DNA from: Auanema rhodensis
Lineage: Eukaryota; Animalia; Nematoda
Reading direction: 5' to 3'
DNA: 64,000 nt
Assembly (NCBI GenBank): GCA_964057225.1
Contig: OZ059899.1
Span: 20,770,001-20,834,000, forward strand
A program made the position numbers and the translations under genes. The notes under the pieces were generated by a model. It was not told the DNA's origin, did not search any database, and saw only the letters and a program-made list of their open reading frames with translations. Shown here in pieces: positions 1 through 64,000 of this stretch (the first letter of the stretch is position 1; each line of letters starts with the position of its first letter).

Positions 1-3000
1 TTTTTCATACGATCATAACTAATTTTTGTATTAAGCGTTTCTCAATGTAGTATAGTGCTTTCGATGCGGATTTTTAAGTTGCGTCGATCTGTGTTATCAG
101 ATTTGCGCTAGCTTAAAAATGCACCGAGATATCAACTGATATAAGTTCACACTTATATCCTCGATTTTCACCCTGAAGAATTAATTTTTTCGTTGAATAA
201 CTTTGTCCATCGTCTTTGCCTTGAAAAAAGTAATCTAAAAACATCTACTTTTTGTGAAATTATTTTGAAATTTTTAGGGAAAATTTTGGTCAAAATGTTT
301 TTGGAAGCAATGTTGAGTGTACATGGAATCTCAACATACACTAAGGCATCATTTTTCAAACGATCATAACTAATTTTTGTATTAAGCGTTTCTCAATGTA
401 GTATAGTGCATTCAATGCGGATTTTTAAGCTGCGTCGATCTGTGTTATCAGATTTGCGCTAGCTTAAAAATGCACCGAGATATCAACTGATATAAGTTCA
501 CAATTATATCCTCGATTTTCACATTGAAGAACTAATTTTTTCGTTGAATAACATTGTCCATCGTCTTTGCCTTGAAAGAAGGAATCTAAAAACATCTACT
601 TTTTGCTAAATTATTTTGAAATTTTTCGAAAAAATTTTTGTCAAAATGTTTTTGGAAGCAATGTTGAGTGTACATGGAATCTCAACATACACTAAGGCAT
701 CATTTTTCAAACGATCATAACTAATTTTTGTATTAAGCGTTTCTCAATGTAGTATAGTGCTTTCGATGCGGATTTTTAAGTTGCGTCGATCTGTGTTATC
801 AGATTTGCGCTAGCTTAAAAATGCACCGAGATATCAACTGATATAAGTTCACACTTATATCCTCGATTTTCACCCTGAAGAATTAATTTTTTCGTTGAAT
901 AACTTTGTCCATCGTCTTTGCCTTGAAAAAAGGAATCTAAAAACATCTACTATTTGCGAAATTATTTTGAATTTTTTCGGAAACATTTTTGTCAAAATGT
1001 TTTTGGAAGCAATGTTGAGTGTACATGGAAACTCAACATACACTAATGCATCTTTTTTCAAACGATCATAACTAATTTTTGTAATAAGCGTTTCTCAATG
1101 TTGTATAGTGCATTCGATGCGGATTTTTAAGCTGCGTCGATCTGTGTTATCAGATTTGCGCTAGCTTAAAAATGCACCGAGATATCAACTGATATAAGTT
1201 CACACTTATATCCTCGATTTTCACATTGAAGAACTAATTTTTTCGTTGAATAACATTGTCCATCGTCTTTGCCTTGAAAGAAGGAATCTAAAAACATCTA
1301 CTTTTTGCTAAATTATTTTGAAATTTTTCGAAAAAATTTTTGTCAAAATGTTTTTGGAAGCAATGTTGAGTGTACATGGAATCTCAACATACACTAAGGC
1401 ATCATTTTTCAAACGATCATAACTAATTTTTGTATTAAGCGTTTCTCAATGTAGTATAGTGCTTTCGATGCGGATTTTTAAGTTGCGTCGATCTGTGTTA
1501 TCAGATTTGCGCTAGCTTAAAAATGCACCGAGATATCAACTGATATAAGTTCACACTTATATCCTCGATTTTCACCCTGAAGAATTAATTTTTTCGTTGA
1601 ATAACTTTGTCCATCGTCTTTGCCTTGAAAAAAGGAATCTAAAAACATCTACTATTTGCGAAATTATTTTGAATTTTTTCGGAAACATTTTTGTCAAAAT
1701 GTTTTTGGAAGCAATGTTGAGTGTACATGGAAACTCAACATACACTAATGCATCTTTTTTCAAACGATCATAACTAATTTTTGTAATAAGCGTTTCTCAA
1801 TGTTGTATAGTGCATTCGATGCGGATTTTTAAGCTGCGTCGATCTGTGTTATCAGATTTGCGCTAGCTTAAAAATGCACCGAGATATCAACTGATATAAG
1901 TTCACACTTATATCCTCGATTTTCACATTGAAGAACTAATTTTTTCGTTGAATAACATTGTCCATCGTCTTTGCCTTGAAAAAAGGAATCTAAAAACATC
2001 TACTTTTTGCTAAATTATTTTGAAATTTTTCGAAAAAATTTTTGTCAAAATGTTTTTGGAAGCAATGTTGAGTGTACATGGAATCTCAACATACACTAAG
2101 GCATCATTTTTCAAACGATCATGACTAATTTTTGTATTGAGGGTTTCTCAATGTAATATAGTGCATTCGATGCGGATTTTTAAGCTGCGTCGATCTGTGT
2201 TATCAGATTTGCGCTAGCTTAAAAATGCACCGAGATATCAACTGATATAAGTTCACAATTATATCCTCGATTTTCACATTGAAGAACTAATTTTTTCGTT
2301 GAATAACATTGTCCATCGTCTTTGCCTTGAAAGAAGGAATCTAAAAACATCTACTTTTTGCTAAATTATTTTGAAATTTTTCGAAAAAATTTTTGTCAAA
2401 ATGTTTTTGGAAGCAATGTTGAGTGTACATGGAATCTCAACATACACTAAGGCATCATTTTTCATACGATCATAACTAATTTTTGTATTAAGCGTTTCTC
2501 AATGTAGTATAGTGCTTTCGATGCGGATTTTTAAGTTGCGTCGATCTGTGTTATCAGATTTGCGCTAGCTTAAAAATGCACCGAGATATCAACTGATATA
2601 AGTTCACACTTATATCCTCGATTTTCACCCTGAAGAATTAATTTTTTCGTTGAATAACTTTGTCCATCGTCTTTGCCTTGAAAAAAGTAATCTAAAAACA
2701 TCTACTTTTTGTGAAATTATTTTGAAATTTTTAGGGAAAATTTTGGTCAAAATGTTTTTGGAAGCAATGTTGAGTGTACATGGAATCTCAACATACACTA
2801 AGGCATCATTTTTCAAACGATCATAACTAATTTTTGTATTAAGCGTTTCTCAATGTAGTATAGTGCATTCAATGCGGATTTTTAAGCTGCGTCGATCTGT
2901 GTTATCAGATTTGCGCTAGCTTAAAAATGCACCGAGATATCAACTGATATAAGTTCACAATTATATCCTCGATTTTCACATTGAAGAACTAATTTTTTCG

Positions 3001-4650
3001 TTGAATAACATTGTCCATCGTCTTTGCCTTGAAAGAAGGAATCTAAAAACATCTACTTTTTGCTAAATTATTTTGAAATTTTTCGAAAAAATTTTTGTCA
3101 AAATGTTTTTGGAAGCAATGTTGAGTGTACATGGAATCTCAACATACACTAAGGCATCATTTTTCAAACGATCATAACTAATTTTTGTATTAAGCGTTTC
3201 TCAATGTAGTATAGTGCTTTCGATGCGGATTTTTAAGTTGCGTCGATCTGTGTTATCAGATTTGCGCTAGCTTAAAAATGCACCGAGATATCAACTGATA
3301 TAAGTTCACACTTATATCCTCGATTTTCACCCTGAAGAATTAATTTTTTCGTTGAATAACTTTGTCCATCGTCTTTGCCTTGAAAAAAGGAATCTAAAAA
3401 CATCTACTATTTGCGAAATTATTTTGAATTTTTTCGGAAACATTTTTGTCAAAATGTTTTTGGAAGCAATGTTGAGTGTACATGGAAACTCAACATACAC
3501 TAATGCATCTTTTTTCAAACGATCATAACTAATTTTTGTAATAAGCGTTTCTCAATGTTGTATAGTGCATTCGATGCGGATTTTTAAGCTGCGTCGATCT
3601 GTGTTATCAGATTTGCGCTAGCTTAAAAATGCACCGAGATATCAACTGATATAAGTTCACACTTATATCCTCGATTTTCACATTGAAGAACTAATTTTTT
3701 CGTTGAATAACATTGTCCATCGTCTTTGCCTTGAAAGAAGGAATCTAAAAACATCTACTTTTTGCTAAATTATTTTGAAATTTTTCGAAAAAATTTTTGT
3801 CAAAATGTTTTTGGAAGCAATGTTGAGTGTACATGGAATCTCAACATACACTAAGGCATCATTTTTCAAACGATCATAACTAATTTTTGTATTAAGCGTT
3901 TCTCAATGTAGTATAGTGCTTTCGATGCGGATTTTTAAGTTGCGTCGATCTGTGTTATCAGATTTGCGCTAGCTTAAAAATGCACCGAGATATCAACTGA
4001 TATAAGTTCACACTTATATCCTCGATTTTCACCCTGAAGAATTAATTTTTTCGTTGAATAACTTTGTCCATCGTCTTTGCCTTGAAAAAAGGAATCTAAA
4101 AACATCTACTATTTGCGAAATTATTTTGAATTTTTTCGGAAACATTTTTGTCAAAATGTTTTTGGAAGCAATGTTGAGTGTACATGGAAACTCAACATAC
4201 ACTAATGCATCTTTTTTCAAACGATCATAACTAATTTTTGTAATAAGCGTTTCTCAATGTTGTATAGTGCATTCGATGCGGATTTTTAAGCTGCGTCGAT
4301 CTGTGTTATCAGATTTGCGCTAGCTTAAAAATGCACCGAGATATCAACTGATATAAGTTCACACTTATATCCTCGATTTTCACATTGAAGAACTAATTTT
4401 TTCGTTGAATAACATTGTCCATCGTCTTTGCCTTGAAAAAAGGAATCTAAAAACATCTACTTTTTGCTAAATTATTTTGAAATTTTTCGAAAAAATTTTT
4501 GTCAAAATGTTTTTGGAAGCAATGTTGAGTGTACATGGAATCTCAACATACACTAAGGCATCATTTTTCAAACGATCATGACTAATTTTTGTATTGAGGG
4601 TTTCTCAATGTAATATAGTGCATTCGATGCGGATTTTTAAGCTGCGTCGA
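1..4650 (+). repeat. 7-monomer higher-order repeat (2457 bp, pattern A-B-C-B-C-B'-B), about 1.9 copies, with an internal 702-bp dimer
   Basis: The rare variant tttttcatacgatc occurs at 1 and 2458. ORF variants 168/2625, 870/3327 and 1572/4029 are all offset by 2457 = 7x351. Confidence 0.9.
61..127. other. About 30-bp-arm imperfect inverted repeat present in every 351-bp monomer (first copy shown)
   Basis: Consensus tcgatgc-gg-atttttaagct-gcgtcgatctg [tgttat] cagatttgcgc-t-agcttaaaaat-gcaccga, with an 11-bp perfect core atttttaagct/agcttaaaaat. This first copy carries one mismatch (aagtt). Confidence 0.85.
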
Positions 4651-5989
4651 TTTGTGTTATCAGATTTGCGCTAGCTTAAAAATGCACCGAGATATCAACT
4701 GATATAAGTTCACACTTATATCCTCGATTTTCACCCTGAAAAATTGATTTTTTCGTTGAATAACACTGTCCATCGTCTTTGCCTTGAAAAAAGGAATCTA
4801 AAAACATCTACTTTTTGTGAAATTATTTTGAAATTTTCAGGGAAAATTTTTGTCAAAATGTTTTTGGAAGCAATGTTGAGTGTACATGGAAACTCAACAT
4901 ACACTAATGCATCATTTTTCAAACGATCATAACTAATTTTTGTATTGAGGGTTTCTCAATGTAGTATAGTGCATTCGATGCGGATTTGTAAGCTGCGTCG
5001 ATCTGTGTTATCAGATTTGCGCTAGCTTAAAAAAGCACCGAGATATCAACTGATATAAGTTCACACTTATATCCTCGATTTTCACCCTGAAGAATTAATT
5101 TTTTTGTTGAATAACATTGTCCATCGTCTTCGCCTTGAAAAAAGGAATCTAAAAACATCTACTTTTTGTGAAATTATTTCGAAATTTTTAGGTAAAATTT
5201 TTGTCAAAATGTTTTTGAAAGCAATGTTGAGTGTACATGGAAACTCAACATACACTAATGCATCATTTTTCAAACGATCATGACTAATTTTTGTATTGAG
5301 GGTTTCTCAATGTAGTATAGTGCATTCGATGCGGATTTTTAAGCTGCGTCGATCTGTGTTATCAGATTTGCGCTAGCTTAAAAATGCACCGAGATATCAA
5401 CTGATATAAGTTTACACTTATATCCTCGATTTTCACCCTGGAGAATTAATTTTTTTGTTGTATAACATTGTCCATCGTCTTCGCCTTGAAAAAAGGAATC
5501 TAAAAACATCTACTTTTTGTGAAATTATTTCGAAATTTTTAGGTAAAATTTTTGTCAAAATGTTTTTGAAAGCAATGTTGAGTGTACATGGAAACTCAAC
5601 ATACACTAATGCATCATTTTTCAAACGATCATGACTAATTTTTGTATTAAGCGTTTCTCAATGTTGTATAGTGCATTCGATGCGGATTTTTAAGCTGCGT
5701 CGATCTATGTTATCAGATTTGCGCTATCTTAAAAATGCACCGAGATATCAACTGATATAAGTTCACACTTATATCCTCGATTTTCACCCTGAAAAATTAA
5801 TTTTTTGTGTTGAATAACATTGTCCATCGTCTTCACCTTGAAAAAAGGAATCTAAAAACAACTACTTTTTGTGAAATTATTTCGAAATTTTTAGGGAAAA
5901 TTTTTGTCAAAATGTTTTTGGAAGCAATGTTGAGTGTACATGGAAACTCAACATACACTAATGCATCATTTTTCAAACGATCATGACTA

Positions 5990-8900
5990 ATTTTTGTATT
6001 GAGGGTTTCTCAATGTAGTATAGTGCATTCGATGCGGATTTTTAAGCTGCGTCGATCTGTGTTATCAGATTTGCGCTAGCTTAAAAATGCACCGAGATAT
6101 CAACTGATATAAGTTCACACTTATATCCTCGATTTTCACCCTGAAAAATTGATTTTTTCGTTGAATAACATTGTCCATCGTCTTTGCCTTGAAAAAAGGA
6201 ATCTAAAAACAACTACTTTTTGTGAAATTATTTCGAAATTTTTAGGGAAAATTTTTGTCAAAATGTTTTTGGAAGCAATGTTGAGTGTACATGGAAACTC
6301 AACATACACTAATACATCATTTTTTAAACGATCATAACTAATTTTTGTATTGAGGGTTTCTCAATGTAGTATAGTGCATTCGATGCGGATTTTGAAGCTG
6401 CGTCGATCTGTGTTATCAGATTTGCGCTAGCTTAAAAATGCACCGAGATATCAACTGATATAAGTTAACACATATATCCTCGATTTTCACCCTGAAGAAT
6501 TAATTTTTTTGTTGAATAACATTGTCCATCGTCTTCGCCTTGAAAAAAGGAATCTAAAAACATCTACTTTTTGTGAAATTATTTTGAAATTTTTAGGGAA
6601 AATTTTGGTCAAAATGTTTTTGGAAGCAATGTTGAGTGTACATGGAAACTCAACATACACTAATGCATCATTTTTCAAACGATCATGACTAATTTTTGTG
6701 GAAACTCAACATACACTAATACATCATTTTTTAAACGATCATAACTAATTTTTGTATTGAGGGTTTCTCAATGTAGTATAGTGCATTCGATGCGGATTTT
6801 TAAGCTGCGTCCATCTGTGTTATCAGATTTGCGCTAGCTTAAAAATGCACCGAGATATCAACTGATATAAGTTCACACTTATATCCTCGATTTTCACCCT
6901 GAAAAATTGATTTTTTCGTTGAATAACATTGTCCATCGTCTTTGCCTTGAAAAAAGGAATCTAAAAACAACTACTTTTTGTGAAATTATTTCGAAATTTT
7001 TAGGGAAAATTTTTGTCAAAATGTTTTTGGAAGCAATGTTGAGTGTACATGGAAACTCAACATACACTAATACATCATTTTTCAAACGATCATAACTAAT
7101 TTTTGTATTAAGCGTTTCTCAATGTTGTATAGTGCATTCGATGCGGATTTTTAAGCTGCGTCGATCTATGTTATCAGATTTGCGCTATCTTAAAAATGCA
7201 CCGAGATATCAACTGATATAAGTTTACACTTATATCCTCGATTTTCACCCTGAAGAATTAATTTTTTTGTTGAATAACATTGTCCATCGTCTTCACCTTG
7301 AAAAAAGGAATCTAAAAACATCTACTTTTTGTAAAATTATTTTGAAATTTTTAGGGAAAATTTTTGTCAAAATGTTTTTGGAAGCAATGTTGAGTGTACA
7401 TGGAAACTCAACATACACTAATGCAACATTTTTCAAACGATCATAACTAATTTTTGTATTGAGGGTTTCTCAATGTAGTATAGTGCATTCGATGCGGATT
7501 TTTAAGCTGCGTCGATCTGTGTTATCAGATTTGCGCTAGCTTAAAAAAGCACCGAGATATCAACTGATATAAGTTAACACATATATCCTCGATTTTCACC
7601 CTGAAGAATTAATTTTTTTGTTGAATAACATTGTCCATCGTCTTCGCCTTGAAAAAAGGAATCTAAAAACATCTACTTTTTGTGAAATTATTTTGAAATT
7701 TTTAGGGAAAATTTTTGTCAAAATGTTTTTGGAAGCAATGTTGAGTGTACATGGAAACTCAACATACACTAATGCATCATTTTTCAAACGATCATGACTA
7801 ATTTTTGTATTGAGGGTTTCTCAATGTAGTATAGTGCATTCGATGCGGATTTTTAAGCTGCGTCGATCTGTGTTATCAGATTTGCGCTAGCTTAAAAATG
7901 CACCGAGATATCAACTGATATAAGTTCACACTTATATCCTCGATTTTCACCCTGAAAAATTGATTTTTTCGTTGAATAACATTGTCCATCGTCTTTGCCT
8001 TGAAAAAAGGAATCTAAAAACAACTACTTTTTGTGAAATTATTTCGAAATTTTTAGGGAAAATTTTTGTCAAAATGTTTTTGGAAGCAATGTTGAGTGTA
8101 CATGGAAACTCAACATACACTAATACATCATTTTTTAAACGATCATAACTAATTTTTGTATTGAGGGTTTCTCAATGTAGTATAGTGCATTCGATGCGGA
8201 TTTTGAAGCTGCGTCGATCTGTGTTATCAGATTTGCGCTAGCTTAAAAATGCACCGAGATATCAACTGATATAAGTTAACACATATATCCTCGATTTTCA
8301 CCCTGAAGAATTAATTTTTTTGTTGAATAACATTGTCCATCGTCTTCGCCTTGAAAAAAGGAATCTAAAAACATCTACTTTTTGTGAAATTATTTTGAAA
8401 TTTTTAGGGAAAATTTTGGTCAAAATGTTTTTGGAAGCAATGTTGAGTGTACATGGAAACTCAACATACACTAATGCATCATTTTTCAAACGATCATGAC
8501 TAATTTTTGTGGAAACTCAACATACACTAATACATCATTTTTTAAACGATCATAACTAATTTTTGTATTGAGGGTTTCTCAATGTAGTATAGTGCATTCG
8601 ATGCGGATTTTTAAGCTGCGTCCATCTGTGTTATCAGATTTGCGCTAGCTTAAAAATGCACCGAGATATCAACTGATATAAGTTCACACTTATATCCTCG
8701 ATTTTCACCCTGAAAAATTGATTTTTTCGTTGAATAACATTGTCCATCGTCTTTGCCTTGAAAAAAGGAATCTAAAAACAACTACTTTTTGTGAAATTAT
8801 TTCGAAATTTTTAGGGAAAATTTTTGTCAAAATGTTTTTGGAAGCAATGTTGAGTGTACATGGAAACTCAACATACACTAATACATCATTTTTCAAACGA

Positions 8901-9480
8901 TCATAACTAATTTTTGTATTAAGCGTTTCTCAATGTTGTATAGTGCATTCGATGCGGATTTTTAAGCTGCGTCGATCTATGTTATCAGATTTGCGCTATC
9001 TTAAAAATGCACCGAGATATCAACTGATATAAGTTTACACTTATATCCTCGATTTTCACCCTGAAGAATTAATTTTTTTGTTGAATAACATTGTCCATCG
9101 TCTTCACCTTGAAAAAAGGAATCTAAAAACATCTACTTTTTGTAAAATTATTTTGAAATTTTTAGGGAAAATTTTTGTCAAAATGTTTTTGGAAGCAATG
9201 TTGAGTGTACATGGAAACTCAACATACACTAATGCAACATTTTTCAAACGATCATAACTAATTTTTGTATTGAGGGTTTCTCAATGTAGTATAGTGCATT
9301 CGATGCGGATTTTTAAGCTGCGTCGATCTGTGTTATCAGATTTGCGCTAGCTTAAAAAAGCACCGAGATATCAACTGATATAAGTTAACACATATATCCT
9401 CGATTTTCACCCTGAAGAATTAATTTTTTTGTTGAATAACATTGTCCATCGTCTTCGCCTTGAAAAAAGGAATCTAAAAA
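5990..9480 (+). repeat. 1811-bp higher-order repeat (5 monomers plus a 56-bp insertion), about 2 copies
   Basis: ORF variants 6149/7960, 6487/8298 and 6894/8705 are offset by 1811 = 5x351+56. The same 56-bp duplication is present at 6643-6754 and 8454-8565. Confidence 0.9.
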
Positions 9481-12400
9481 CATCTACTTTTTGTAAAATT
9501 ATTTTGAAATTTTTAGGGAAAATTTTTGTCAAAATGTTTTTGGAAGCAATGTTGAGTGTACATGGAATCTCAACATACACTAAGGCATCATTTTTCATAC
9601 GATCATAACTAATTTTTGTATTAAGCGTTTCTCAATGTAGTATAGTGCATTCGATGCGGATTTTTAAGCTGCGTCGATCTGTGTTATCAGATTTGCGCTA
9701 GCTTAAAAAAGCACCGAGATATCAACTGATATAAGTTAACACATATATCCTCGATTTTCACCCTGAAGAATTAATTTTTTTGTTGAATAACATAGTCCAT
9801 CGTCTTCGCCTTGAAAAAAGGAATCTAAAAACATCTACTTTTTGTGAAATTATTTTGAAATTTTTAGGGAAAATTTTTGTCAAAATGTTTTTGGAAGCAA
9901 TGTTGAGTGTACATGGAAACTCAACATACACTAATACATCATTTTTTAAACGATCATAACTAATTTTTGTATTGAGGGTTTCTCAATGTAGTATAGTGCA
10001 TTCGATGCGGATTTTTAAGCTGCGTCGATCTGTGTTATCAGATTTGCGCTAGCTTAAAAAAGCACCGAGATATCAACTGATATAAGTTAACACATATATC
10101 CTCGATTTTCACCCTGAAGAATTAATTTTTTTGTTGAATAACATTGTCCATCGTCTTTGCCTTGAAAAAAGGAATCTAAAAACATCTACTTTTCGCGAAA
10201 TTATTTTGAAATTTTTCGGAAAAATTTTTGTCAAAATGTTTTTGGAAGCAATGTTGAGTGTACATGGAAACTCAACATACACTAATACATCATTTTTTAA
10301 ACGATCATAACTAATTTTTGTATTGAGGGTTTCTCAATGTAGTATAGTGCATTCGATGCGGATTTTTAAGCTGCGTCGATCTGTGTTATCAGATTTGCGC
10401 TAGCTTAAAAAAGCACCGAGATATCAACTGATATAAGTTAACACATATATCCTCGATTTTCACCCTGAAGAATTAATTTTTTTGTTGAATAACATAGTCC
10501 ATCGTTTTCGCCTTGAAAAAAGGAATCTAAAAACATCTACTTTTTGTGAAATTATTTTGAAATTTTTAGGGAAAATTTTTGTCAAAATGTTTTTGGAAGC
10601 AATGTTGAGTGTACATGGAAACTCAACATACACTAATACATCATTTTTTAAACGATCATAACTAATTTTTGTATTGAGGGTTTCTCAATGTAGTATAGTG
10701 CATTCGATGCGGATTTTTAAGCTGCGTCGATCTGTGTTATCAGATTTGCGCTAGCTTAAAAAAGCACCGAGATATCAACTGATATAAGTTAACACATATA
10801 TCCTCGATTTTCACCCTGAAGAATTAATTTTTTTGTTGAATAACATTGTCCATCGTCTTTGCCTTGAAAAAAGGAATCTAAAAACAATTACTTTTTGTGA
10901 AATTATTTTGAAATTTTTAGGGAAAATTTTTGTCAAAATGTTTTTGGAAGCAATGTTGAGTGTACATGGAAACTCAACATACACTAATACATCATTTTTT
11001 AAACGATCATAACTAATTTTTGTATTGAGGGTTTCTCAATGTAGTATAGTGCATTCGATGCGGATTTTTAAGCTGCGTCGATCTGTGTTATCAGATTTGC
11101 GCTAGCTTAAAAAAGCACCGAGATATCAACTGATATAAGTTCACACTTATATCCTCGATTTTCACCCTGAAAAATTGATTTTTTCGTTGAATAACATTGT
11201 CCATCGTCTTTGCCTTGAAAAAAGGAATCTAAAAACAACTACTTTTTGTGAAATTATTTCGAAATTTTTAGGTAAAATTTTTGTCAAAATGTTTTTGAAA
11301 GCAATGTTGAGTGTACATGGAAACTCAACATACACTAATGCATCTTTTTTCAAACGATCATGACTAATTTTTGTATTAAGAGTTTCTCAATGTAGTATAG
11401 TGCATTCGATGCGGATTTTTAAGCTGCGTCGATCTGTGTTATCAGATTTGCGCTAGCTTAAAAATGCACCGAGATATCAACTGATATAAGTTTACACTTA
11501 TATCCTCGATTTTCACCCTGGAGAATTGATTTTTTCGTTGAATAACAATGTCCATCGTCTTCGCCTTAAAAAAAAATCTAAAAACATCTACTTTTTGTGA
11601 AATTATTTTGAAATTTTTAGGGAAAATTTTGGCAAAATGTTTTTGGAAGCAATGTTGAGTGTACATGGAAACTCAACATACACTAATGCATCATTTTTCA
11701 AACGATCATAACTAATTTTTGTATTGAGCGTTTCTCAATGTAGTATAGTGCATTCGATGCGGATTTTTAAGCTGCGTCGATCTATGTTATCAGATTTGCG
11801 CTATCTTAAAAATGCACCGAGATATCAACTGATATAAGTTCACACTTATAATCTCGATTTTCACCCTGAAGAATTAATTTTTTTGTTGAATAACATTGTC
11901 CATCGTCTTCACCTTGAAAAAAGAAATCTAAAAACATCTACTTTTTGTAAAATTATTTTGAAATTTTTAGGGAAAATTTTTGTCAAAATGTTTTTGGAAG
12001 CAATGTTGAGTGTACATGGAAACTCAACATACACTAATACATCATTTTTTAAACGATCATAACTAATTTTTGTATTGAGGGTTTCTCAGTGTAGTATAGT
12101 GCATTCGATGCGGATTTTTAAGCTGCGTCGATCTGTGTTATCAGATTTGCGCTAGCTTAAAAAAGCACCGAGATATCAACTGATATAAGTTCACACTTAT
12201 ATCCTCGATTTTCACCCTGAAAAATTGATTTTTTCGTTGAATAACATTGTCCATCGTCTTTGCCTTGAAAAAAGGAATCTAAAAACAACTACTTTTTGTG
12301 AAATTATTTCGAAATTTTTAGGTAAAATTTTTGTCAAAATGTTTTTGAAAGCAATGTTGAGTGTACATGGAAACTCAACATACACTAATGCATCTTTTTT

Positions 12401-50570: not shown

Positions 50571-52499
50571 CTCGGTACATTTTTAAGCTAGCGCAAATCT
50601 GATAACACAGATCGACGCAGCTTAAAAATCCGCATCGAATGCACTATACAACATTGAGAAACGCTTAATACAAAAATTAGTTATGATCGTTTGAAAAATG
50701 ATGCATTAGTGTATGTTGAGTTTCCATGTACACTCAACATTGCTTCCAAAAACATTTTGATAAAAATTTTTCCGAAAAATTTCGAAAAAATTTCGCGAAA
50801 AGTAGATGTTTTTAGATTCCTTTTTTCAAGGCAAAGACGATGGACAATGTTATTCAACGAAAAAATTATTTCTGCAGGGTGAAAATCGAGGATATAAGTG
50901 TGAACTTATATCAGTTGATATCTCGGTGCATTTTTAAGCTAGCGCAAATCTGATAACACAGATCGACGCAGCTTAAAAATCCGCATCGAATGCACTATAC
51001 AACATTGAGAAACGCTCAATACAAAAATTAGTTATGATCGTTTGAAAAATGATGCATTAGTGTATGTTGAGTTTCCATGTACACTCAACATTGCTTCCAA
51101 AAACATTTTGATAAAAATTTTTCCGAAAAATTTCAAAATAATTTCGCGAAAAGTAGATGTTTTTAGATTCCTTTTTTCAAGGCAAAGACGATGGACAATG
51201 TTATTCAACGAAAAAATTAATTCTGCAGGGTGAAAATCGAGGATATAAGTGTGAACTTATATCAGTTGATATCTCGGTGCATTTTTAAGCTAGCGCAAAT
51301 CTGATAACACAGATCGACGCAGCTTAAAAATCCGCATCGAATGCACTATACAACATTGAGAAACGCTTAATACAAAAATAAGTTATGATCGTTTGAAAAA
51401 TGATGCATTAGTGTATGTTGAGTTTCCATGTACACTCAACATTGCTTCCAAAAACATTTTGACAAAAATTTTTCCGAAAAATTTCAAAATAATTTCGCGA
51501 AAAGTAGATGTTTTTAGATTCCTTTTTTCAAGGCAAAGACGATGGACAATGTTATTCAACGAAAAAATTAATTCTGCAGGGTGAAAATCGAGGATATAAG
51601 TGTGAACTTATATCAGTTGATATCTCGGTGCATTTTGAAGCTAGCGCAAATCTGATAACACAGATCGACGCAGCTTAAAAATCCGCATCGAATGCACTAT
51701 ACTGCATTGAGAAACGCTTAATACAAAAGTTAGTTATGATCGTTTGAAAAATGATGCATTAGTGTATGTTGAGTTTCCATGTACACTCAACATTGCTTCC
51801 AAAAACATTTTGACAAAAATTTTTCCGAAAAATTTTAAAATAATTTCGCAAAAAGTAGATGTTTTTAGATTCCTTTTTTCAAGGCAAAGACGATGGACAA
51901 TGTTATTCAACGAAAAAATTAATTCTGCAGGGTGAAAATCGAGGATATAAGTGTGAACTTATATCAGTTGATATCTCGGTGCATTTTTAAGCTAGCGCAA
52001 ATCTGATAACACAGATCGACGCAGCTTAAAAATCCGCATCGAATGCACTATACTACATTGAGAAACGCTTGATACAAAAATTAGGTATGATCGTTTGAAA
52101 AATGATGCATTAGTGTATGTTGAGTTTCCATGTACACTCAACATTGCTTCCAAAAACATTTTGACAAAAATTTTTCTGAAAAATTTCGAAAAAATTTCGC
52201 AAAAAGTAGATGTTTTTAGATTCCTTTTTTCAAGGCAAAGACGATGGACAATGTTATTCAACGAAAAAATTATTTCTGCAGGGTGAAAATCGAGGATATA
52301 TGTGTGAACTTATATCAGTTGATATCTCGGTGCATTTTTAAGCTAGCGCAAATCTGATAACACAGATCGACGCAGCTTGAAAATCCGCATCAAATGCACT
52401 ATACAACATTGAGAAACGCTTAATACAAAAATTAGTTATGATCGTTTGAAAAATGATGCATTAGTGTATGTTGAGTTTCCATGTACACTCAACATTGCT

Positions 52500-55400
52500 T
52501 CCAAAAACATTTTGACAAAAATTTTTCCGAAAAATTTCAAAATAATTTCGCGAAAAGTAGATGTTTTTAGATTCCTTTTTTCAAGGCAAAGACGATGGAC
52601 AATGTTATTCAACGAAAAAATTATTTCTGCAGGGTGAAAATCGAGGATATAAGTGTGAACTTATATCAGTTGATATCTCGGTGCATTTTTAAGCTAGCGC
52701 AAATCTGATAACACAGATCGACGCAGCTTAAAAATCCGCATCGAATGCACTATACAACATTGAGAAACGCTCAATACAAAAATTAGTTATGATCGTTTGA
52801 AAAATGATGCATTAGTGTATGTTGAGTTTCCATGTACACTCAACATTGCTTCCAAAAACATTTTGATAAAAATTTTTCCGAAAAATTTCAAAATAATTTC
52901 GCGAAAAGTAGATGTTTTTAGATTCCTTTTTTCAAGGCAAAGACGATGGACAATGTTATTCAACGAAAAAATTAATTCTCCAGGGTGAAAATCGAGGATA
53001 TAAGTGTGAACTTATATCAGTTGATATCTCGGTGCATTTTTAAGCTAGCGCAAATCTGATAACACAGATCGACGCAGCTTAAAAATCCGCATCGAATGCA
53101 CTATACAACATTGAGAAACGCTTAATACAAAAATTAGTTATGATTGTTTGAAAAATGATGCATTAGTGTATGTTGAGTTTCCATGTACACTCAACATAGC
53201 TTCCAAAAACATTTTGACAAAAATTTTTCCGAAAAATTTCGAAATAAATTTGCAAAAAGTAGATGTTTTTAGATTCCTTTTTCCAAGGCAAAGACGATGG
53301 ACAATGTTATTCAACGAAAAAATTAATTCTGCAGGGTGAAAATCGAGGATATAAGTGTGAACTTATATCAGTTGATATCTCGGTGCATTTTTAAGCTAGC
53401 GCAAATCTGATAACACAGATCGACGCAGCTTAAAAATCCGCATCGAATGCACTATACTACATTGAGAAACGCTTGATACAAAAATTAGTTATGATCGTTT
53501 AAAAATTATGCATTAGTGTATGTTGAGTTTCCATGTACACTCAACATTGCTTCCAAAAACATTTTGACAAAAATTTTTCCGAAAAATTTCAAAATAATTT
53601 CGCGAAAAGTAGATGTTTTTAGATTCCTTTTTTCAAGGCAAAGACGATGGACAATGTTATTCAACGAAAAAATTATTTCTGCAGGGTGAAAATCGAGGAT
53701 ATAAGTGTGAACTTATATCAGTTGATATCTCGGTGCATTTTTAAGCTAGCGCAAATCTGATAACACAGATCGACGCAGCTTAAAAATCCGCATCGAATGC
53801 ACTATACAACATTGAGAAACGCTCAATACAAAAATTAGTTATGATCGTTTGAAAAATGATGCATTAGTGTATGTTGAGTTTCCATGTACACTCAACATTG
53901 CTTCCAAAAACATTTTGATAAAAATTTTTCCGAAAAATTTCAAAATAATTTCGCGAAAAGTAGATGTTTTTAGATTCCTTTTTTCAAGGCAAAGACGATG
54001 GACAATGTTATTCAACGAAAAAATTAATTCTCCAGGGTGAAAATCGAGGATATAAGTGTGAACTTATATCAGTTGATATCTCGGTGCATTTTTAAGCTAG
54101 CGCAAATCTGATAACACAGATCGACGCAGCTTAAAAATCCGCATCGAATGCACTATACAACATTGAGAAACGCTTAATACAAAAATTAGTTATGATTGTT
54201 TGAAAAATGATGCATTAGTGTATGTTGAGTTTCCATGTACACTCAACATAGCTTCCAAAAACATTTTGACAAAAATTTTTCCGAAAAATTTCGAAATAAA
54301 TTTGCAAAAAGTAGATGTTTTTAGATTCCTTTTTCCAAGGCAAAGACGATGGACAATGTTATTCAACGAAAAAATTAATTCTGCAGGGTGAAAATCGAGG
54401 ATATAAGTGTGAACTTATATCAGTTGATATCTCGGTGCATTTTTAAGCTAGCGCAAATCTGATAACACAGATCGACGCAGCTTAAAAATCCGCATCGAAT
54501 GCACTATACTACATTGAGAAACGCTTGATACAAAAATTAGTTATGATCGTTTAAAAATTATGCATTAGTGTATGTTGAGTTTCCATGTACACTCAACATT
54601 GCTTCCAAAAACATTTTGACAAAAATTTTTCCGAAAAATTTCAAAATAATTTCGCGAAAAGTAGATGTTTTTAGATTCCTTTTTTCAAGGCAAAGACGAT
54701 GGACAATGTTATTCAACGAAAAAATTATTTCTGCAGGGTGAAAATCGAGGATATAAGTGTGAACTTATATCAGTTGATATCTCGGTGCATTTTTAAGCTA
54801 GCGCAAATCTGATAACACAGATCGACGCAGCTTAAAAATCCGCATCGAATGCACTATACAACATTGAGAAACGCTCAATACAAAAATTAGTTATGATCGT
54901 TTGAAAAATGATGCATTAGTGTATGTTGAGTTTCCATGTACACTCAACATTGCTTCCAAAAACATTTTGATAAAAATTTTTCCGAAAAATTTCAAAATAA
55001 TTTCGCGAAAAGTAGATGTTTTTAGATTCCTTTTTTCAAGGCAAAGACGATGGACAATGTTATTCAACGAAAAAATTAATTCTCCAGGGTGAAAATCGAG
55101 GATATAAGTGTGAACTTATATCAGTTGATATCTCGGTGCATTTTTAAGCTAGCGCAAATCTGATAACACAGATCGACGCAGCTTAAAAATCCGCATCGAA
55201 TGCACTATACTACATTGAGAAACGCTTGATACAAAAATTAGTTATGATCGTTTAAAAATTATGCATTAGTGTATGTTGAGTTTCCATGTACACTCAACAT
55301 TGCTTCCAAAAACATTTTGACAAAAATTTTTCCGAAAAATTTCAAAATAATTTCGCGAAAAGTAGATGTTTTTAGATTCCTTTTTTCAAGGCAAAGACGA

Positions 55401-55900
55401 TGGACAATGTTATTCAACGAAAAAATTATTTCTGCAGGGTGAAAATCGAGGATATAAGTGTGAACTTATATCAGTTGATATCTCGGTGCATTTTTAAGCT
55501 AGCGCAAATCTGATAACACAGATCGACGCAGCTTAAAAATCCGCATCGAATGCACTATACAACATTGAGAAACGCTCAATACAAAAATTAGTTATGATCG
55601 TTTGAAAAATGATGCATTAGTGTATGTTGAGTTTCCATGTACACTCAACATTGCTTCCAAAAACATTTTGATAAAAATTTTTCCGAAAAATTTCAAAATA
55701 ATTTCGCGAAAAGTAGATGTTTTTAGATTCCTTTTTTCAAGGCAAAGACGATGGACAATGTTATTCAACGAAAAAATTAATTCTCCAGGGTGAAAATCGA
55801 GGATATAAGTGTGAACTTATATCAGTTGATATCTCGGTGCATTTTTAAGCTAGCGCAAATCTGATAACACAGATCGACGCAGCTTAAAAATCCGCATCGA
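52500..55900 (-). repeat. 3-monomer higher-order repeat (1052 bp, containing a 350-bp monomer), about 3 copies, the last lacking one monomer
   Basis: 52797/53849/54901 are offset by 1052, then 701 to 55602. The variant cgtttaaaaattatgc occurs at about 53497, 54548 and 55249. Confidence 0.85.
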
Positions 55901-58900
55901 ATGCACTATACAACATTGAGAAACGCTTAATACAAAAATTAGTTATGATCGTTTGAAAAATGATGCATTAGTGTATGTTGAGTTTCCATGTACACTCAAC
56001 ATAGCTTCCAAAAACATTTTGACAAAAATTTTTCCGAAAAATTTCGAAATAAATTTGCAAAAAGTAGATGTTTTTAGATTCCTTTTTCCAAGGCAAAGAC
56101 GATGGACAATGTTATTCAACGAAAAAATTAATTCTGCAGGGTGAAAATCGAGGATATAAGTGTGAACTTATATCAGTTGATATCTCGGTGCATTTTTAAG
56201 CTAGCGCAAATCTGATAACACAGATCGACGCAGCTTAAAAATCCGCATCGAATGCACTATACAACATTGAGAAACGCTCAATACAAAAATTAGTTATGAT
56301 CGTTTGAAAAATGATGCATTAGTGTATGTTGAGTTTCCATGTACACTCAACATTGCTTCCAAAAACATTTTGATAAAAATTTTTCCGAAAAATTTCAAAA
56401 TAATTTCGCGAAAAGTAGATGTTTTTAGATTCCTTTTTTCAAGGCAAAGACGATGGACAATGTTATTCAACGAAAAAATTAATTCTCCAGGGTGAAAATC
56501 GAGGATATAAGTGTGAACTTATATCAGTTGATATCTCGGTGCATTTTTAAGCTAGCGCAAATCTGATAACACAGATCGACGCAGCTTAAAAATCCGCATC
56601 GAATGCACTATACAACATTGAGAAACGCTTAATACAAAAATTAGTTATGATCGTTTGAAAAATGATGCATTAGTGTATGTTGAGTTTCCATGTACACTCA
56701 ACATAGCTTCCAAAAACATTTTGACAAAAATTTTTCCGAAAAATTTCGAAATAAATTTGCAAAAAGTAGATGTTTTTAGATTCCTTTTTCCAAGGCAAAG
56801 ACGATGGACAATGTTATTCAACGAAAAAATTAATTCTGCAGGGTGAAAATCGAGGATATAAGTGTGAACTTATATCAGTTGATATCTCGGTGCATTTTTA
56901 AGCTAGCGCAAATCTGATAACACAGATCGACGCAGCTTAAAAATCCGCATCGAATGCACTATACTACATTGAGAAACGCTTGATACAAAAATTAGTCATG
57001 ATCGTTTGAAAAATGATGCATTAGTGTATGTTGAGTTTCCATGTACACTCAACATTGCTTCCAAAAACATTTTGACAAAAATTTTTCCGAAAAATTTCAA
57101 AACAATTTCGCGAAAAGTAGATGTTTTTAGATTCCTTTTTTCAAGGCAAAGACGATGGACAATGTTATTCAACGAAAAAATTATTTCTGCAGGGTGAAAA
57201 TCGAGGATATAAGTGTGAACTTATATCAGTTGATATCTCGGTGCATTTTTAAGCTAGCGCAAATCTGATAACACAGATCGACGCAGCTTAAAAATCCGCA
57301 TCGAATGCACTATACTACATTGAGAAACGCTTGATACAAAAATTAGGTATGATCGTTTGAAAAATGATGCATTAATGTATGTTGAGTTTCCATGTACACT
57401 CAACATTGCTTCCAAAAACATTTTGACAAAAATTTTTCCGAAAAATTTCGAAAAAATTTCGCGAAAAGTAGATGTTTTTAGGTTCCTTTTTTCAAGGCAA
57501 AGACGATGGACAATGTTATTCAACGAAAAAATTATTTCTGCAGGGTGAAAATCGAGGATATAAGTGTGAACTTATATCAGTTGATATCTCGGTGCATTTT
57601 TAAGCTAGCGCAAATCTGATAACACAGATCGACGCAGCTTAAAAATCCGCATCAAATGCACTATACTACATTGAGAAACGCTTGATACAAAAATTAGTCA
57701 TGATCGTTTGAAAAATGATGCATTAGTGTATGTTGAGTTTCCATGTACACTCAACATTGCTTCCAAAAACATTTTGACAAAAATTTTTCCGAAAAATTTC
57801 AAAATAATTTCGCGAAAAGTAGATGTTTTTAGATTCCTTTTTTCAAGGCAAAGACGATGGACAATGTTATTCAACGAAAAAATTATTTCTGCAGGGTGAA
57901 AATCGAGGATATAAGTGTGAACTTATATCAGTTGATATCTCGGTGCATTTTTAAGCTAGCGCAAATCTGATAATACAGATCGACGCAGCTTAAAAATCCG
58001 CATCGAATGCACTATACAACATTGAGAAACGCTTAATACAAAAATTAGTTATGATCGTTTGAAAAATGATGCATTAGTGTATGTTGAGTTTCCATGTACA
58101 CTCAACATTGCTTCCAAAAACATTTTGACAAAAATTTTTCCGAAAAATTTCAAAATAATTTCGCGAAAAGTAGATGTTTTTAGATTCCTTTTTTCAAGGC
58201 AAAGACGATGGACAATGTTATTCAACGAAAAAATTATTTCTGCAGGGTGAAAATCGAGGATATAAGTGTGAACTTATATCAGTTGATATCTCGGTGCATT
58301 TTTAAGCTAGCGCAAATCTGATAATACAGATCGACGCAGCTTAAAAATCCGCATCGAATGCACTATACAACATTGAGAAACGCTTAATACAAAAATTAGT
58401 TATGATCGTTTGAAAAATGATGCATTAGTGTATGTTGAGTTTCCATGTACACTCAACATTGCTTCCAAAAACATTTTGACAAAAATTTTTCCGAAAAATT
58501 TCAAAATAATTTCGCGAAAAGTAGATGTTTTTAGATTCCTTTTTTCAAGGCAAAGACGATGGACAATGTTATTCAACGAAAAAATTATTTCTGCAGGGTG
58601 AAAATCGAGGATATAAGTGTGAACTTATATCAGTTGATATCTCGGTGCATTTTTAAGCTAGCGCAAATCTGATAATACAGATCGACGCAGCTTAAAAATC
58701 CGCATCGAATGCACTATACAACATTGAGAAACGCTTGATACAAAAATTAGTTATGATCGTTTGAAAAATGATGCATTAGTGTATGTTGAGTTTCCATGTA
58801 CACTCAACATTGCTTCCAAAAACATTTTGACAAAAATTTTTCCGAAAAATTTCAAAATAATTTCGCGAAAAGTAGATGTTTTTAGATTCCTTTTTTCAAG

Positions 58901-59999
58901 GCAAAGACGATGGACAATGTTATTCAACGAAAAAATTATTTCTGCAGGGTGAAAATCGAGGATATAAGTGTGAACTTATATCAGTTGATATCTCGGTGCA
59001 TTTTTAAGCTAGCGCAAATCTGATAACACAGATCGACGCAGCTTGAAAATCCGCATCAAATGCACTATACAACATTGAGAAACGCTTAATACAAAAATTA
59101 GTTATGATCGTTTGAAAAATGATGCATTAGTGTATGTTGAGTTTCCATGTACACTCAACATTGCTTCCAAAAACATTTTGATAAAAATTTTTCCGAAAAA
59201 TTTCAAAATAATTTCGCGAAAAGTAGATGTTTTTAGATTCCTTTTTTCAAGGCAAAGACGATGGACAATGTTATTCAACGAAAAAATTAATTCTCCAGGG
59301 TGAAAATCGAGGATATAAGTGTGAACTTATATCAGTTGATATCTCGGTGCATTTTTAAGCTAGCGCAAATCTGATAACACAGATCGACGCAGCTTAAAAA
59401 TCCGCATCGAATGCACTATACAACATTGAGAAACGCTTAATACAAAAATTAGTTATGATCGTTTGAAAAATGATGCATTAGTGTATGTTGAGTTTCCATG
59501 TACACTCAACATAGCTTCCAAAAACATTTTGACAAAAATTTTTCCGAAAAATTTCGAAATAAATTTGCAAAAAGTAGATGTTTTTAGATTCCTTTTTCCA
59601 AGGCAAAGACGATGGACAATGTTATTCAACGAAAAAATTAATTCTGCAGGGTGAAAATCGAGGATATAAGTGTGAACTTATATCAGTTGATATCTCGGTG
59701 CATTTTTAAGCTAGCGCAAATCTGATAACACAGATCGACGCAGCTTAAAAATCCGCATCGAATGCACTATACTACATTGAGAAACGCTTGATACAAAAAT
59801 TAGTCATGATCGTTTGAAAAATGATGCATTAGTGTATGTTGAGTTTCCATGTACACTCAACATTGCTTCCAAAAACATTTTGACAAAAATTTTTCCGAAA
59901 AATTTCAAAATAATTTCGCGAAAAGTAGATGTTTTTAGATTCCTTTTTTCAAGCCAAAGACGATGGACAATGTTATTCAACGAAAAAATTATTTCTGCA

Positions 60000-62900
60000 G
60001 GGTGAAAATCGAGGATATAAGTGTGAACTTATATCAGTTGATATCTCGGTGCATTTTTAAGCTAGCGCAAATCTGATAACACAGATCGACGCAGCTTAAA
60101 AATCCGCATCGAATGCACTATACAACATTGAGAAACGCTTAATACAAAAATTAGTTATGATCGTTTGAAAAATGATGCATTAGTGTATGTTGAGTTTCCA
60201 TGTACACTCAACATAGCTTCCAAAAACATTTTGACAAAAATTTTTCCGAAAAATTTCGAAATAAATTTGCAAAAAGTAGATGTTTTTAGATTCCTTTTTC
60301 CAAGGCAAAGACGATGGACAATGTTATTCAACGAAAAAATTAATTCTGCAGGGTGAAAATCGAGGATATAAGTGTGAACTTATATCAGTTGATATCTCGG
60401 TGCATTTTTAAGCTAGCGCAAATCTGATAACACAGATCGACGCAGCTTAAAAATCCGCATCGAATGCACTATACTACATTGAGAAACGCTTGATACAAAA
60501 ATTAGTCATGATCGTTTGAAAAATGATGCATTAGTGTATGTTGAGTTTCCATGTACACTCAACATTGCTTCCAAAAACATTTTGACAAAAATTTTTCCGA
60601 AAAATTTCAAAATAATTTCGCGAAAAGTAGATGTTTTTAGATTCCTTTTTTCAAGGCAAAGACGATGGACAATGTTATTCAACGAAAAAATTATTTCTGC
60701 AGGGTGAAAATCGAGGATATAAGTGTGAACTTATATCAGTTGATATCTCGGTGCATTTTTAAGCTAGCGCAAATCTGATAACACAGATCGACGCAGCTTA
60801 AAAATCCGCATCGAATGCACTATACTACATTGAGAAACGCTTGATACAAAAATTAGGTATGATCGTTTGAAAAATGATGCATTAATGTATGTTGAGTTTC
60901 CATGTACACTCAACATTGCTTCCAAAAACATTTTGACAAAAATTTTTCCGAAAAATTTCGAAAAAATTTCGCGAAAAGTAGATGTTTTTAGGTTCCTTTT
61001 TTCAAGGCAAAGACGATGGACAATGTTATTCAACGAAAAAATTATTTCTGCAGGGTGAAAATCGAGGATATAAGTGTGAACTTATATCAGTTGATATCTC
61101 GGTGCATTTTTAAGCTAGCGCAAATCTGATAACACAGATCGACGCAGCTTAAAAATCCGCATCGAATGCACTATACAACATTGAGAAACGCTCAATACAA
61201 AAATTAGTTATGATCGTTTGAAAAATGATGCATTAGTGTATGTTGAGTTTCCATGTACACTCAACATTGCTTCCAAAAACATTTTGATAAAAATTTTTCC
61301 GAAAAATTTCAAAATAATTTCGCGAAAAGTAGATGTTTTTAGATTCCTTTTTTCAAGGCAAAGACGATGGACAATGTTATTCAACGAAAAAATTAATTCT
61401 GCAGGGTGAAAATCGAGGATATAAGTGTGAACTTATATCAGTTGATATCTCGGTGCATTTTTAAGCTAGCGCAAATCTGATAACACAGATCGACGCAGCT
61501 TAAAAATCCGCATCGAATGCACTATACAACATTGAGAAACGCTTAATACAAAAATTAGTTATGATCGTTTGAAAAATGATGCATTAGTGTATGTTGAGTT
61601 TCCATGTACACTCAACATTGCTTCCAAAAACATTTTGACAAAAATTTTTCCGAAAAATTTCAAAATAATTTCGCGAAAAGTAGATGTTTTTAGATTCCTT
61701 TTTTCAAGGCAAAGACGATGGACAATGTTATTCAACGAAAAAATTATTTCTGCAGGGTGAAAATCGAGGATATAAGTGTGAACTTATATCAGTTGATATC
61801 TCGGTGCATTTTTAAGCTAGCGCAAATCTGATAACACAGATCGACGCAGCTTGAAAATCCGCATCAAATGCACTATACAACATTGAGAAACGCTTAATAC
61901 AAAAATTAGTTATGATCGTTTGAAAAATGATGCATTAGTGTATGTTGAGTTTCCATGTACACTCAACATTGCTTCCAAAAACATTTTGACAAAAATTTTT
62001 CCGAAAAATTTCGAAAAAATTTCGCGAAAAGTAGATGTTTTTAGGTTCCTTTTTTCAAGGCAAAGACGATGGACAATGTTATTCAACGAAAAAATTATTT
62101 CTGCAGGGTGAAAATCGAGGATATAAGTGTGAACTTATATCAGTTGATATCTCGGTGCATTTTTAAGCTAGCGCAAATCTGATAACACAGATCGACGCAG
62201 CTTAAAAATCCGCATCGAATGCACTATACAACATTGAGAAACGCTTAATACAAAAATTAGTTATGATCGTTTGAAAAATGATGCATTAGTGTATGTTGAG
62301 TTTCCATGTACACTCAACATAGCTTCCAAAAACATTTTGACAAAAATTTTTCCGAAAAATTTCGAAATAAATTTGCAAAAAGTAGATGTTTTTAGATTCC
62401 TTTTTCCAAGGCAAAGACGATGGACAATGTTATTCAACGAAAAAATTAATTCTGCAGGGTGAAAATCGAGGATATAAGTGTGAACTTATATCAGTTGATA
62501 TCTCGGTGCATTTTTAAGCTAGCGCAAATCTGATAACACAGATCGACGCAGCTTAAAAATCCGCATCGAATGCACTATACTACATTGAGAAACGCTTGAT
62601 ACAAAAATTAGTCATGATCGTTTGAAAAATGATGCATTAGTGTATGTTGAGTTTCCATGTACACTCAACATTGCTTCCAAAAACATTTTGACAAAAATTT
62701 TTCCGAAAAATTTCAAAATAATTTCGCGAAAAGTAGATGTTTTTAGATTCCTTTTTTCAAGGCAAAGACGATGGACAATGTTATTCAACGAAAAAATTAT
62801 TTCTGCAGGGTGAAAATCGAGGATATAAGTGTGAACTTATATCAGTTGATATCTCGGTGCATTTTTAAGCTAGCGCAAATCTGATAACACAGATCGACGC

Positions 62901-64000
62901 AGCTTAAAAATCCGCATCGAATGCACTATACTACATTGAGAAACGCTTGATACAAAAATTAGGTATGATCGTTTGAAAAATGATGCATTAATGTATGTTG
63001 AGTTTCCATGTACACTCAACATTGCTTCCAAAAACATTTTGACAAAAATTTTTCCGAAAAATTTCGAAAAAATTTCGCGAAAAGTAGATGTTTTTAGGTT
63101 CCTTTTTTCAAGGCAAAGACGATGGACAATGTTATTCAACGAAAAAATTATTTCTGCAGGGTGAAAATCGAGGATATAAGTGTGAACTTATATCAGTTGA
63201 TATCTCGGTGCATTTTTAAGCTAGCGCAAATCTGATAACACAGATCGACGCAGCTTAAAAATCCGCATCGAATGCACTATACAACATTGAGAAACGCTCA
63301 ATACAAAAATTAGTTATGATCGTTTGAAAAATGATGCATTAGTGTATGTTGAGTTTCCATGTACACTCAACATTGCTTCCAAAAACATTTTGATAAAAAT
63401 TTTTCCGAAAAATTTCAAAATAATTTCGCGAAAAGTAGATGTTTTTAGATTCCTTTTTTCAAGGCAAAGACGATGGACAATGTTATTCAACGAAAAAATT
63501 AATTCTGCAGGGTGAAAATCGAGGATATAAGTGTGAACTTATATCAGTTGATATCTCGGTGCATTTTTAAGCTAGCGCAAATCTGATAACACAGATCGAC
63601 GCAGCTTAAAAATCCGCATCGAATGCACTATACAACATTGAGAAACGCTTAATACAAAAATTAGTTATGATCGTTTGAAAAATGATGCATTAGTGTATGT
63701 TGAGTTTCCATGTACACTCAACATTGCTTCCAAAAACATTTTGACAAAAATTTTTCCGAAAAATTTCAAAATAATTTCGCGAAAAGTAGATGTTTTTAGA
63801 TTCCTTTTTTCAAGGCAAAGACGATGGACAATGTTATTCAACGAAAAAATTATTTCTGCAGGGTGAAAATCGAGGATATAAGTGTGAACTTATATCAGTT
63901 GATATCTCGGTGCATTTTTAAGCTAGCGCAAATCTGATAACACAGATCGACGCAGCTTGAGAATCCGCATCAAATGCACTATACAACATTGAGAAACGCT
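60000..64000 (-). repeat. 6-monomer higher-order repeat (2106 bp), about 1.9 copies
   Basis: ORF variants 60165/62271, 60516/62622, 60867/62973, 61218/63324 and 61569/63675 are all offset by 2106 = 6x351. Confidence 0.85.

Follow-up and report, generated by a model that had tools for sequence, protein, structure and literature searches.

The 64,000-nucleotide stretch of the nematode Auanema rhodense analysed here (hereafter, the window) corresponds to positions 20770001-20834000 of contig C7 (OZ059899.1, listed under A. rhodensis). Two tandem repeat families, a 351-bp and a 182-bp satellite, follow one another in this stretch in the order 351> 182> | <182 <351, such that two 351-bp arrays of opposite polarity converge on an island of the second satellite, and the 182-bp array itself changes direction inside this island. 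We consider the window likely to contain one of several dispersed copies of a composite module, namely of an old fold-back scar (an inverted duplication), which was spread by segmental duplication and then remodelled locally. The reading is built on the right-hand boundary of the island, which recurs unchanged elsewhere on C7, on the collinearity of the region around the polarity switch between several islands, and on a diverged island on another contig, in which both boundaries are of the same type. In the 180.9-Mb assembly the contigs are labelled C1 and C3-C7, C7 being that of the window.

Architecture of the island and its junctions

Satellite blocks were called with Tandem Repeats Finder and with monomer BLAST searches, and the two methods were in agreement (Table 1). 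A first-pass annotation, made from the window sequence, had proposed that the 351-bp array reverses polarity across a ~12.5-kb island of a second satellite, and that the actual switch point lies within this island. Both statements hold. The island measures 12,508 bp and the switch is internal to it, at 31614/31615. The sign of the AT skew also reverses across the island. With 120 kb upstream and 80 kb downstream added to the window, a total of 264 kb was annotated, which is the part of the ~4-Mb satellite block that was read directly. In its full extent, the left 351-bp arm covers 40.6 kb, starting at another polarity switch (switch A) 20.4 kb upstream of the window, and the right arm covers 83.7 kb, ending at a further one (switch B) 52.4 kb past the window. 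The asymmetry that had been attributed to the architecture is real for the 182-bp arms (11,459 bp forward versus 1,049 bp inverted). For the 351-bp arms it does not hold in full, since both extend past the window and their asymmetry within it is partly an effect of the window edges.

The phases of the junctions were obtained by alignment to consensus monomers built from our own data. The left (J1) and right (J2) junctions of the island join the two families in the same relative polarity and cut both monomers at different phases (Table 1), in agreement with the earlier description. They are also not copies of one junction. The frequencies of J1, J2, the switch centre, the AT-1 probe and the monomer words used below were all determined as whole-genome pattern counts. 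A 28-nt pattern across J1, with up to 3 mismatches, has one forward and no reverse match in 181 Mb, and a 32-nt pattern of the switch centre, also with up to 3 mismatches, has a single match. A search with 34 nt spanning J2 found exactly four sites genome-wide, each letter-perfect and in forward orientation on C7, with none in reverse and none for the control. The 120 nt around J2 are 100% identical in all four copies.

At the 182-bp switch, arms of the same sequence stand head-to-head with a blunt join, leaving an unpaired stretch of 14 nt, an arrangement characteristic of fold-back scars. Switches A and B are direct head-to-head joins of 351-bp units, and no 182-bp DNA was found at either. 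Two of the three switches of the 351-bp family in the 264 kb are therefore without an island; switches lacking an island had been named in the first-pass annotation as evidence that would count against its interpretation. All three switches join like with like, with 0-2 nt of microhomology or filler and with phase gaps of 14 nt (182-bp switch), 49 nt (A) and 61 nt (B). Like-with-like joins with short gaps are the geometry that would be left by a folded-back broken end, or by a template switch during replication. The 301 nt around the 182-bp switch are predicted to fold as one hairpin (z = -26.9); such a strong prediction is expected because any inverted tandem array would give it.

Short inverted repeats were noticed at two breakpoints within the 351-bp unit. 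The 351-bp breakpoint of J2 (window 32664-32690, phases 98 to ~78) ends a short perfect inverted repeat, ATATAAGT ... ACTTATAT, which may form a hairpin and could perhaps be prone to breakage. The right breakpoint of switch A falls inside a short hairpin-forming inverted repeat of the unit.

Several subtypes of the 182-bp unit can be distinguished, and three of them (M, N and O) make up a domain that is limited to the flanks of the switch. M and N occur exclusively within ~0.75 kb on either side of it. Across the switch, M units are 98.9% identical and N units 96-97% identical; the M and N units that flank the switch are not arranged in mirror order. The inverted arm includes a duplication of a 357-bp O-M dimer. 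The forward arm contains recent direct duplications, displaced by 2,727, 906 and 727 bp, in which stretches of up to 1,170 bp are perfect. When the two 182-bp arms were aligned locally, the preferred register was displaced by 163 bp; with the alignment anchored at the centre, the spacer came to ~20 nt. The two registers are about equally good and, thus, the term "1-kb palindrome" describes the geometry of this region rather than a recent copy.

Most 351-bp units have their best match (~99.7%) within their own block, indicative of local homogenisation. The left arm (window 1-20156 and beyond) is more heterogeneous, with values of 0.96-0.97 to the global consensus versus ~0.98 in the flanking blocks, and the edge of this heterogeneous domain coincides with switch A. 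Next to J2, the first full 351-bp unit has remained unhomogenised at the array edge (0.949 to the consensus), as expected if the junction is old. No regular higher-order repeat with a fixed period was found: the lag profiles of the 351-bp arrays are flat, and the 182-bp island contains only a few duplications, of two or three copies. In the right 351-bp arm, an eight-unit (2,806-bp) direct duplication is present at window 34165-35566 and 36971-38372, with 99.7-100% identity unit by unit. Two identical 351-bp units of the left arm, each with a 56-bp internal tandem duplication, are located at window 6643-6755 and 8454-8566; their distance of 1,811 bp points to a local duplication of five units.

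A common ancestry of the two families was also considered and is unsupported. Between the consensus monomers, at window 19780-20520, the whole 182-bp unit can be aligned weakly, on the same strand and collinearly, with phases 32-180 of the 351-bp unit, and this alignment has z = 2.4, with some shuffled sequences scoring higher. The two halves of the 351-bp unit are unrelated to each other.

Copies across the genome and their chromosomal setting

The 351-bp family is very abundant. A conserved 26-mer of its unit matches 61,313 times forward and 56,617 times in reverse, nearly equal on the two strands, which corresponds to ~118,000 copies and ~41 Mb. Among the matches listed, they are found on C1, C3, C4, C5, C6 and C7, mostly near contig ends. 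A 27-mer of the 182-bp unit matches 1,263 times forward and 363 times in reverse (~1,600 copies). Islands of this minor family other than that of the window were taken from match tables in which the best 1-40 candidates were scored, and they are samples. At least eight islands are located on C7, and others on C3, C5 and C6 (Table 1). The switch from forward to inverted 182-bp units is present in islands on C3, C6 and C7; on C3, for example, the island at 20421243-20433807 has its own switch between 20428797 and 20428920. Among the matches listed, the 351-bp units 2-53 kb to the right of the islands at 18.38, 19.51, 19.64 and 20.48 Mb of C7 are inverted, and those to the left of the islands at 17.40 and 17.62 Mb are forward. 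All islands with strand information, on three contigs, lie at converging 351-bp arrays, and each contains a 182>|<182 switch.

The islands on C7 are related to each other beyond the junction. Copies of the switch module at 17.41, 18.38, 19.64 and 20.48 Mb have constant mutual offsets, within 1 bp, over at least 1.1 kb. The copies at 17.41 and 18.38 Mb are offset by 974,333 over at least 1.4 kb (17408820-17410223), and the offsets of the copies at 19.64 and 20.48 Mb are 1,261,105 (1,261,106 at two outer matches) and 2,099,475, respectively. The copy in the window has an offset of 2,418,043 in its left arm versus 2,418,120 in its right arm and J2, corresponding to 77 bp extra between the arms. 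About 315 bp of inverted 182-bp sequence next to J2 are collinear in all four J2 copies, and the inverted 182-bp arm of the copy at 19.51 Mb is longer (~2.9 kb). A junction that recurs (J2, four times) together with collinearity that continues past it (constant offsets) identifies these islands as segmental duplications of a composite module.

The single best candidate scored for a 3.1-kb query across the switch and J2 is located on C6; this search is uninformative for C7. The C6 island (18425251-18431997) is a diverged copy, ~88-96% identical, in which a J2-like junction is spanned both ways, at 18426623-18428228 (minus strand, 90%) and at 18430350-18431997 (plus strand, 88%). Its 182>|<182 switch is located between the two junctions, near 18428.25 kb. 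The forward 182-bp arm is short (~0.9 kb) and the inverted arm long (~3.1 kb), with a 720-bp register repeat. The layout of this island is therefore fully mirrored, 351> J2' 182> | <182 J2 <351. A mirror duplication of the flanks, absent in the window where J1 differs from J2, is thus present in the diverged paralogue.

Since the switch module and J2 are common to several paralogous islands, a 182-bp array carrying an inversion must be older than its present surroundings, as the first-pass annotation had suggested. Its other proposal, an inversion that joined two independent 351/182 boundaries, is unlikely given that both boundaries in C6 are of the J2 type.

Table 1. Satellite blocks, junctions, polarity switches and 182-bp islands; positions without a contig label are those of the window
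Feature	Position	Strand	Details and basis
351-bp satellite (351> arm)	1..20156	+	Tandem Repeats Finder and monomer BLAST
182-bp satellite (182> arm)	20156..31614	+	63 units, several subtypes; Tandem Repeats Finder and monomer BLAST
182-bp satellite, inverted (<182 arm)	31615..32663	-	5 full and 2 partial units, 1,049 bp
351-bp satellite, inverted (<351 arm)	32664..64000	-	Tandem Repeats Finder and monomer BLAST
J1	20142..20169	+	351 phase 334 / 182 phase 1, 1 nt microhomology (T); consensus alignment
182-bp polarity switch	31602..31633	+	182 phase 24 / inverted phase 38, blunt; consensus alignment
J2	32643..32676	+	Inverted 182 phase 80 / 7-nt filler / inverted 351 phase 98; consensus alignment
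Domain of 182-bp subtypes M, N and O	30874..32553		Confined to the two sides of the switch
Switch A, direct head-to-head 351/351	C7:20749604/07		Inverted phase 208, 2-nt filler, forward phase 257
Switch B, direct head-to-head 351/351	C7:20886402		Inverted phase 162, forward phase 223, 2 nt microhomology
J2 copies	C7:17410190, 18384523, 19512136, 20802643	+	Whole-genome pattern search
182-bp islands on C7 (at least 8)	~17.40, 17.62, 17.77, 18.38, 19.51, 19.64, 20.48, 20.80 Mb		Last one is that of the window
182-bp islands on C5	0.94, 1.22, 1.62 Mb		
182-bp islands on C3	20.42, 20.72, 21.96 Mb		
182-bp island on C6	18.43 Mb		

The window is located 0.63 Mb from the end of C7 (21.47 Mb), in a satellite block that starts near 17.3 Mb. 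A preprint on A. rhodense describes a germline genome of 180 Mb with seven germline chromosomes, in which multi-megabase blocks of tandem repeats, almost wholly AT-1 and AT-2, occupy both ends of all autosomes and are eliminated in somatic cells, from the 12-cell stage onwards (10.64898/2026.08.27.747507). The AT-1 probe for fluorescence in situ hybridization, as printed there (10.64898/2026.08.27.747507), has 138,553 matches in the genome, with a period of 176 bp, and we therefore take the assembly to be the A. rhodense germline assembly. The probe has no match within the window; thus, neither the 351-bp nor the 182-bp family is AT-1. Judging from its abundance and distribution, the 351-bp family is probably AT-2, the second autosomal terminal family. 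Following the general statement in the preprint, the block that contains the window would be eliminated from somatic cells.

The sole non-satellite DNA in the 264 kb is a long terminal repeat (LTR) retrotransposon of the Ty3/Gypsy type, located outside the window (11,460 bp, C7:20707905-20719364), where it is inserted in an inverted 351-bp array. Its LTRs, 337 bp each, are 99.4% identical, and the insertion is flanked by a 4-bp target duplication (CCAT). The reading frames of gag (753 aa) and of pol (1,525 aa, comprising protease, reverse transcriptase, RNase H and integrase) are both open. At its N-terminus, the second frame matches a domain of viral fusion glycoproteins (PF24664) with a borderline score (27.9 bits, cut-off 27). 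The element looks young and resides in DNA that is probably germline-only. No Rfam family matched within the 64-kb window, and no telomere repeats were found in the 264 kb.

Origin of the converging arrays

The architecture is best explained by an old break, or an error of replication, close to or at a boundary between 351-bp and 182-bp arrays, after which the DNA end would have folded back and copied itself. The product would be 351> 182> | <182 <351, bounded by J2 on the left and the right alike, the form that the C6 copy keeps. The module, together with flanking 351-bp array, would then have spread by large segmental duplication and ectopic exchange, both within this chromosome end and to other chromosomes. 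In the copy of the window, the forward 182-bp arm would have been reshaped by unequal exchange, the left boundary replaced by J1 and the centre of the palindrome altered. The polarity of the 351-bp array would also have been flipped by separate events that did not involve 182-bp DNA, at switches A and B. J1 and the exact switch sequence are unique and, thus, are probably later changes to the window copy. The presence of J2-type boundaries on both sides in C6 argues that a fold-back duplicated a single boundary and that J1 came about later, in the window copy. We infer from this pattern the fold-back origin, the order of events and the status of the module as a neutral scar without a function of its own.

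Several points weigh against this interpretation. No mirror identity of the 351-bp arms was detected at any register around the island, switch A or switch B. The inverted 182-bp arm matches the adjacent forward arm at 0.895, which is not above the values for distant parts of the array (0.86-0.90). Since the arms are no longer mirror copies, the events would have to be old relative to array turnover, which shows in the direct duplications of the 182-bp array and the right 351-bp arm and in the local homogenisation. In view of this loss of arm-level mirror identity, the fold-back origin rests on the junction geometry, the sharing of subtypes across the switch, and the C6 copy. The identity of the C6 copy to the window module is itself no more than 88-92%. 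The left junctions and centres of the other C7 copies come from tables of the best 26-40 candidates. As to the setting, the 351-bp family is equated with AT-2 by abundance and distribution, and the somatic loss of the block is taken from the general statement in the preprint, not from coverage at the locus.

A single two-break inversion would have flipped either a 52-kb block (switch A to the 182-bp switch) or an 85-kb block (the 182-bp switch to switch B). The alternation of the polarity switches is what an inversion would produce, and the flipped left block would be the distinct, more heterogeneous 351-bp domain with its edge at switch A. However, each switch joins like with like, so both breaks would need to have fallen exactly at pre-existing family boundaries. 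The 182-bp switch is common to paralogues more than 1 Mb away and therefore predates its local context, and the mirror form in C6, with J2-like junctions on both sides, is explained by fold-back and not by simple inversion. We regard a single inversion as unlikely. An assembly error, with near-identical repeats wrongly joined at the switch or at a junction, seems quite improbable, as the switch module and J2 are found again at several sites in exact collinearity, 182-bp switches are found on three contigs, and the junctions are sharp, with unit-phase breaks and the unhomogenised edge unit. Satellite arrays are difficult to assemble, however, and J1 and the exact switch sequence are single in the assembly, hence neither has a second copy that could serve as a cross-check. 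Monomers differ by 2-5%, which should suffice for accurate long reads to resolve them. The preprint reports the use of HiFi and Hi-C data (10.64898/2026.08.27.747507).

The islands could also serve as functional punctuation of germline-restricted blocks, with roles in homologue pairing or chromatin organisation, or as a source of hairpin or double-stranded RNA at the meeting point of two converging 351-bp arrays. Such a role might account for the location of every strand-informative island, on three contigs, at converging 351-bp arrays with a 182>|<182 switch. These islands have junctions in common, however, and are therefore copies of one event and not independent recurrences. The switch centre is predicted to fold into a long hairpin, but this is expected of any inverted tandem array. 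In the preprint, a contribution to meiotic pairing is put forward speculatively for some repeat blocks (10.64898/2026.08.27.747507), an idea that concerns chromosome-specific central blocks and not repeats common to all autosomes. Moreover, from copy to copy there is free variation in arm length, centre and left junction, which is evidence against constraint. We therefore find functional punctuation very improbable. The stronger version, in which the islands would be maintained elements, always located at converging 351-bp arrays and with a functional palindromic centre, is the least probable of the possibilities considered here. If it were true, the centre may yield hairpin or double-stranded RNA feeding small RNAs that mark the blocks, or may set a constant boundary for chromatin or replication in DNA that is due to be eliminated.

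Relation to known systems and significance

Our results do not support the island as a special landmark or centromere core, for which the first-pass annotation had considered it a candidate. Instead of one localised centromere per chromosome, C7 by itself has at least eight islands, with further ones on C3, C5 and C6; two of the three polarity switches in the 264 kb have none, and the block is of the kind reported to be germline-restricted. Rhabditid nematodes, to which Auanema belongs, have holocentric chromosomes (10.1101/2020.09.04.283127). In Ascaris, eliminated DNA is without CENP-A at the elimination divisions (PMC9894435), which serves here as an analogy only. Nothing marks the window island as a centromere or a unique landmark, and a centromere-like role is unsupported. 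Centromere islands of the Drosophila type are complex, embedded in satellite, and bind the centromere histone. The 182-bp islands resemble them as short distinct islands between long simple arrays, but they consist of satellite and are not transposon-rich, occur in multiple copies per chromosome, and belong to a holocentric group.

Strand switches within pericentromeric satellite arrays are known from complete maps of human centromeres and are frequent in some families; more than 200 breakpoints were described for HSat3B5 (chromosome 9) and beta satellite, as well as a 1.7-Mb inversion in the alpha satellite of chromosome 1 (10.1101/2021.07.12.452052). The flips described here are similarly located inside continuous arrays, with three flips of the 351-bp array in 264 kb, one of them across the 182-bp island. 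They differ in that the organism is a holocentric nematode, the DNA is of the kind reported to be germline-restricted, and one class of switch is tied to a second satellite. HSat1A arrays inside the active alpha-satellite arrays of human chromosomes 3 and 4 (10.1101/2021.07.12.452052) are comparable as islands of a second satellite within a far larger array of another family. The flanks of the human HSat1A islands are on the same strand, which speaks for insertion, whereas here the flanks converge, the switch is inside the island and the island is multi-copy.

The arrangement shares with fold-back inversion scars the head-to-head arms, spacers of 14-61 nt, microhomology or filler of 0-2 nt, and a duplicated breakpoint (J2, four copies), and departs from them in that the arms in the window are no longer mirror copies. 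The 351-bp family resembles the terminal AT-1/AT-2 blocks of A. rhodense in its great abundance, its location near contig ends and its presence on at least six contigs. The text of the preprint does not mention polarity switches, a minor 182-bp family, islands or the internal structure of the arrays (10.64898/2026.08.27.747507). Strand switches in arrays and islands of one satellite within another are already well documented, and no new kind of element is described here. What is new, though modestly so, is that a minor satellite forms islands where arrays of the major family converge, and that these islands are probably paralogues derived from a single fold-back module.

These results provide a first look inside the huge repeat blocks that are reportedly removed from the body cells of A. 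rhodense. The 351-bp arrays are not uniform: their polarity flips every few tens of kb, and they contain a young-looking retrotransposon and islands of a minor satellite. The sequences at J1, J2 and switches A and B can be used as markers for assembly checks or for the comparison of strains. The blocks would hold a record of their own growth, by break repair, unequal exchange and large duplication.

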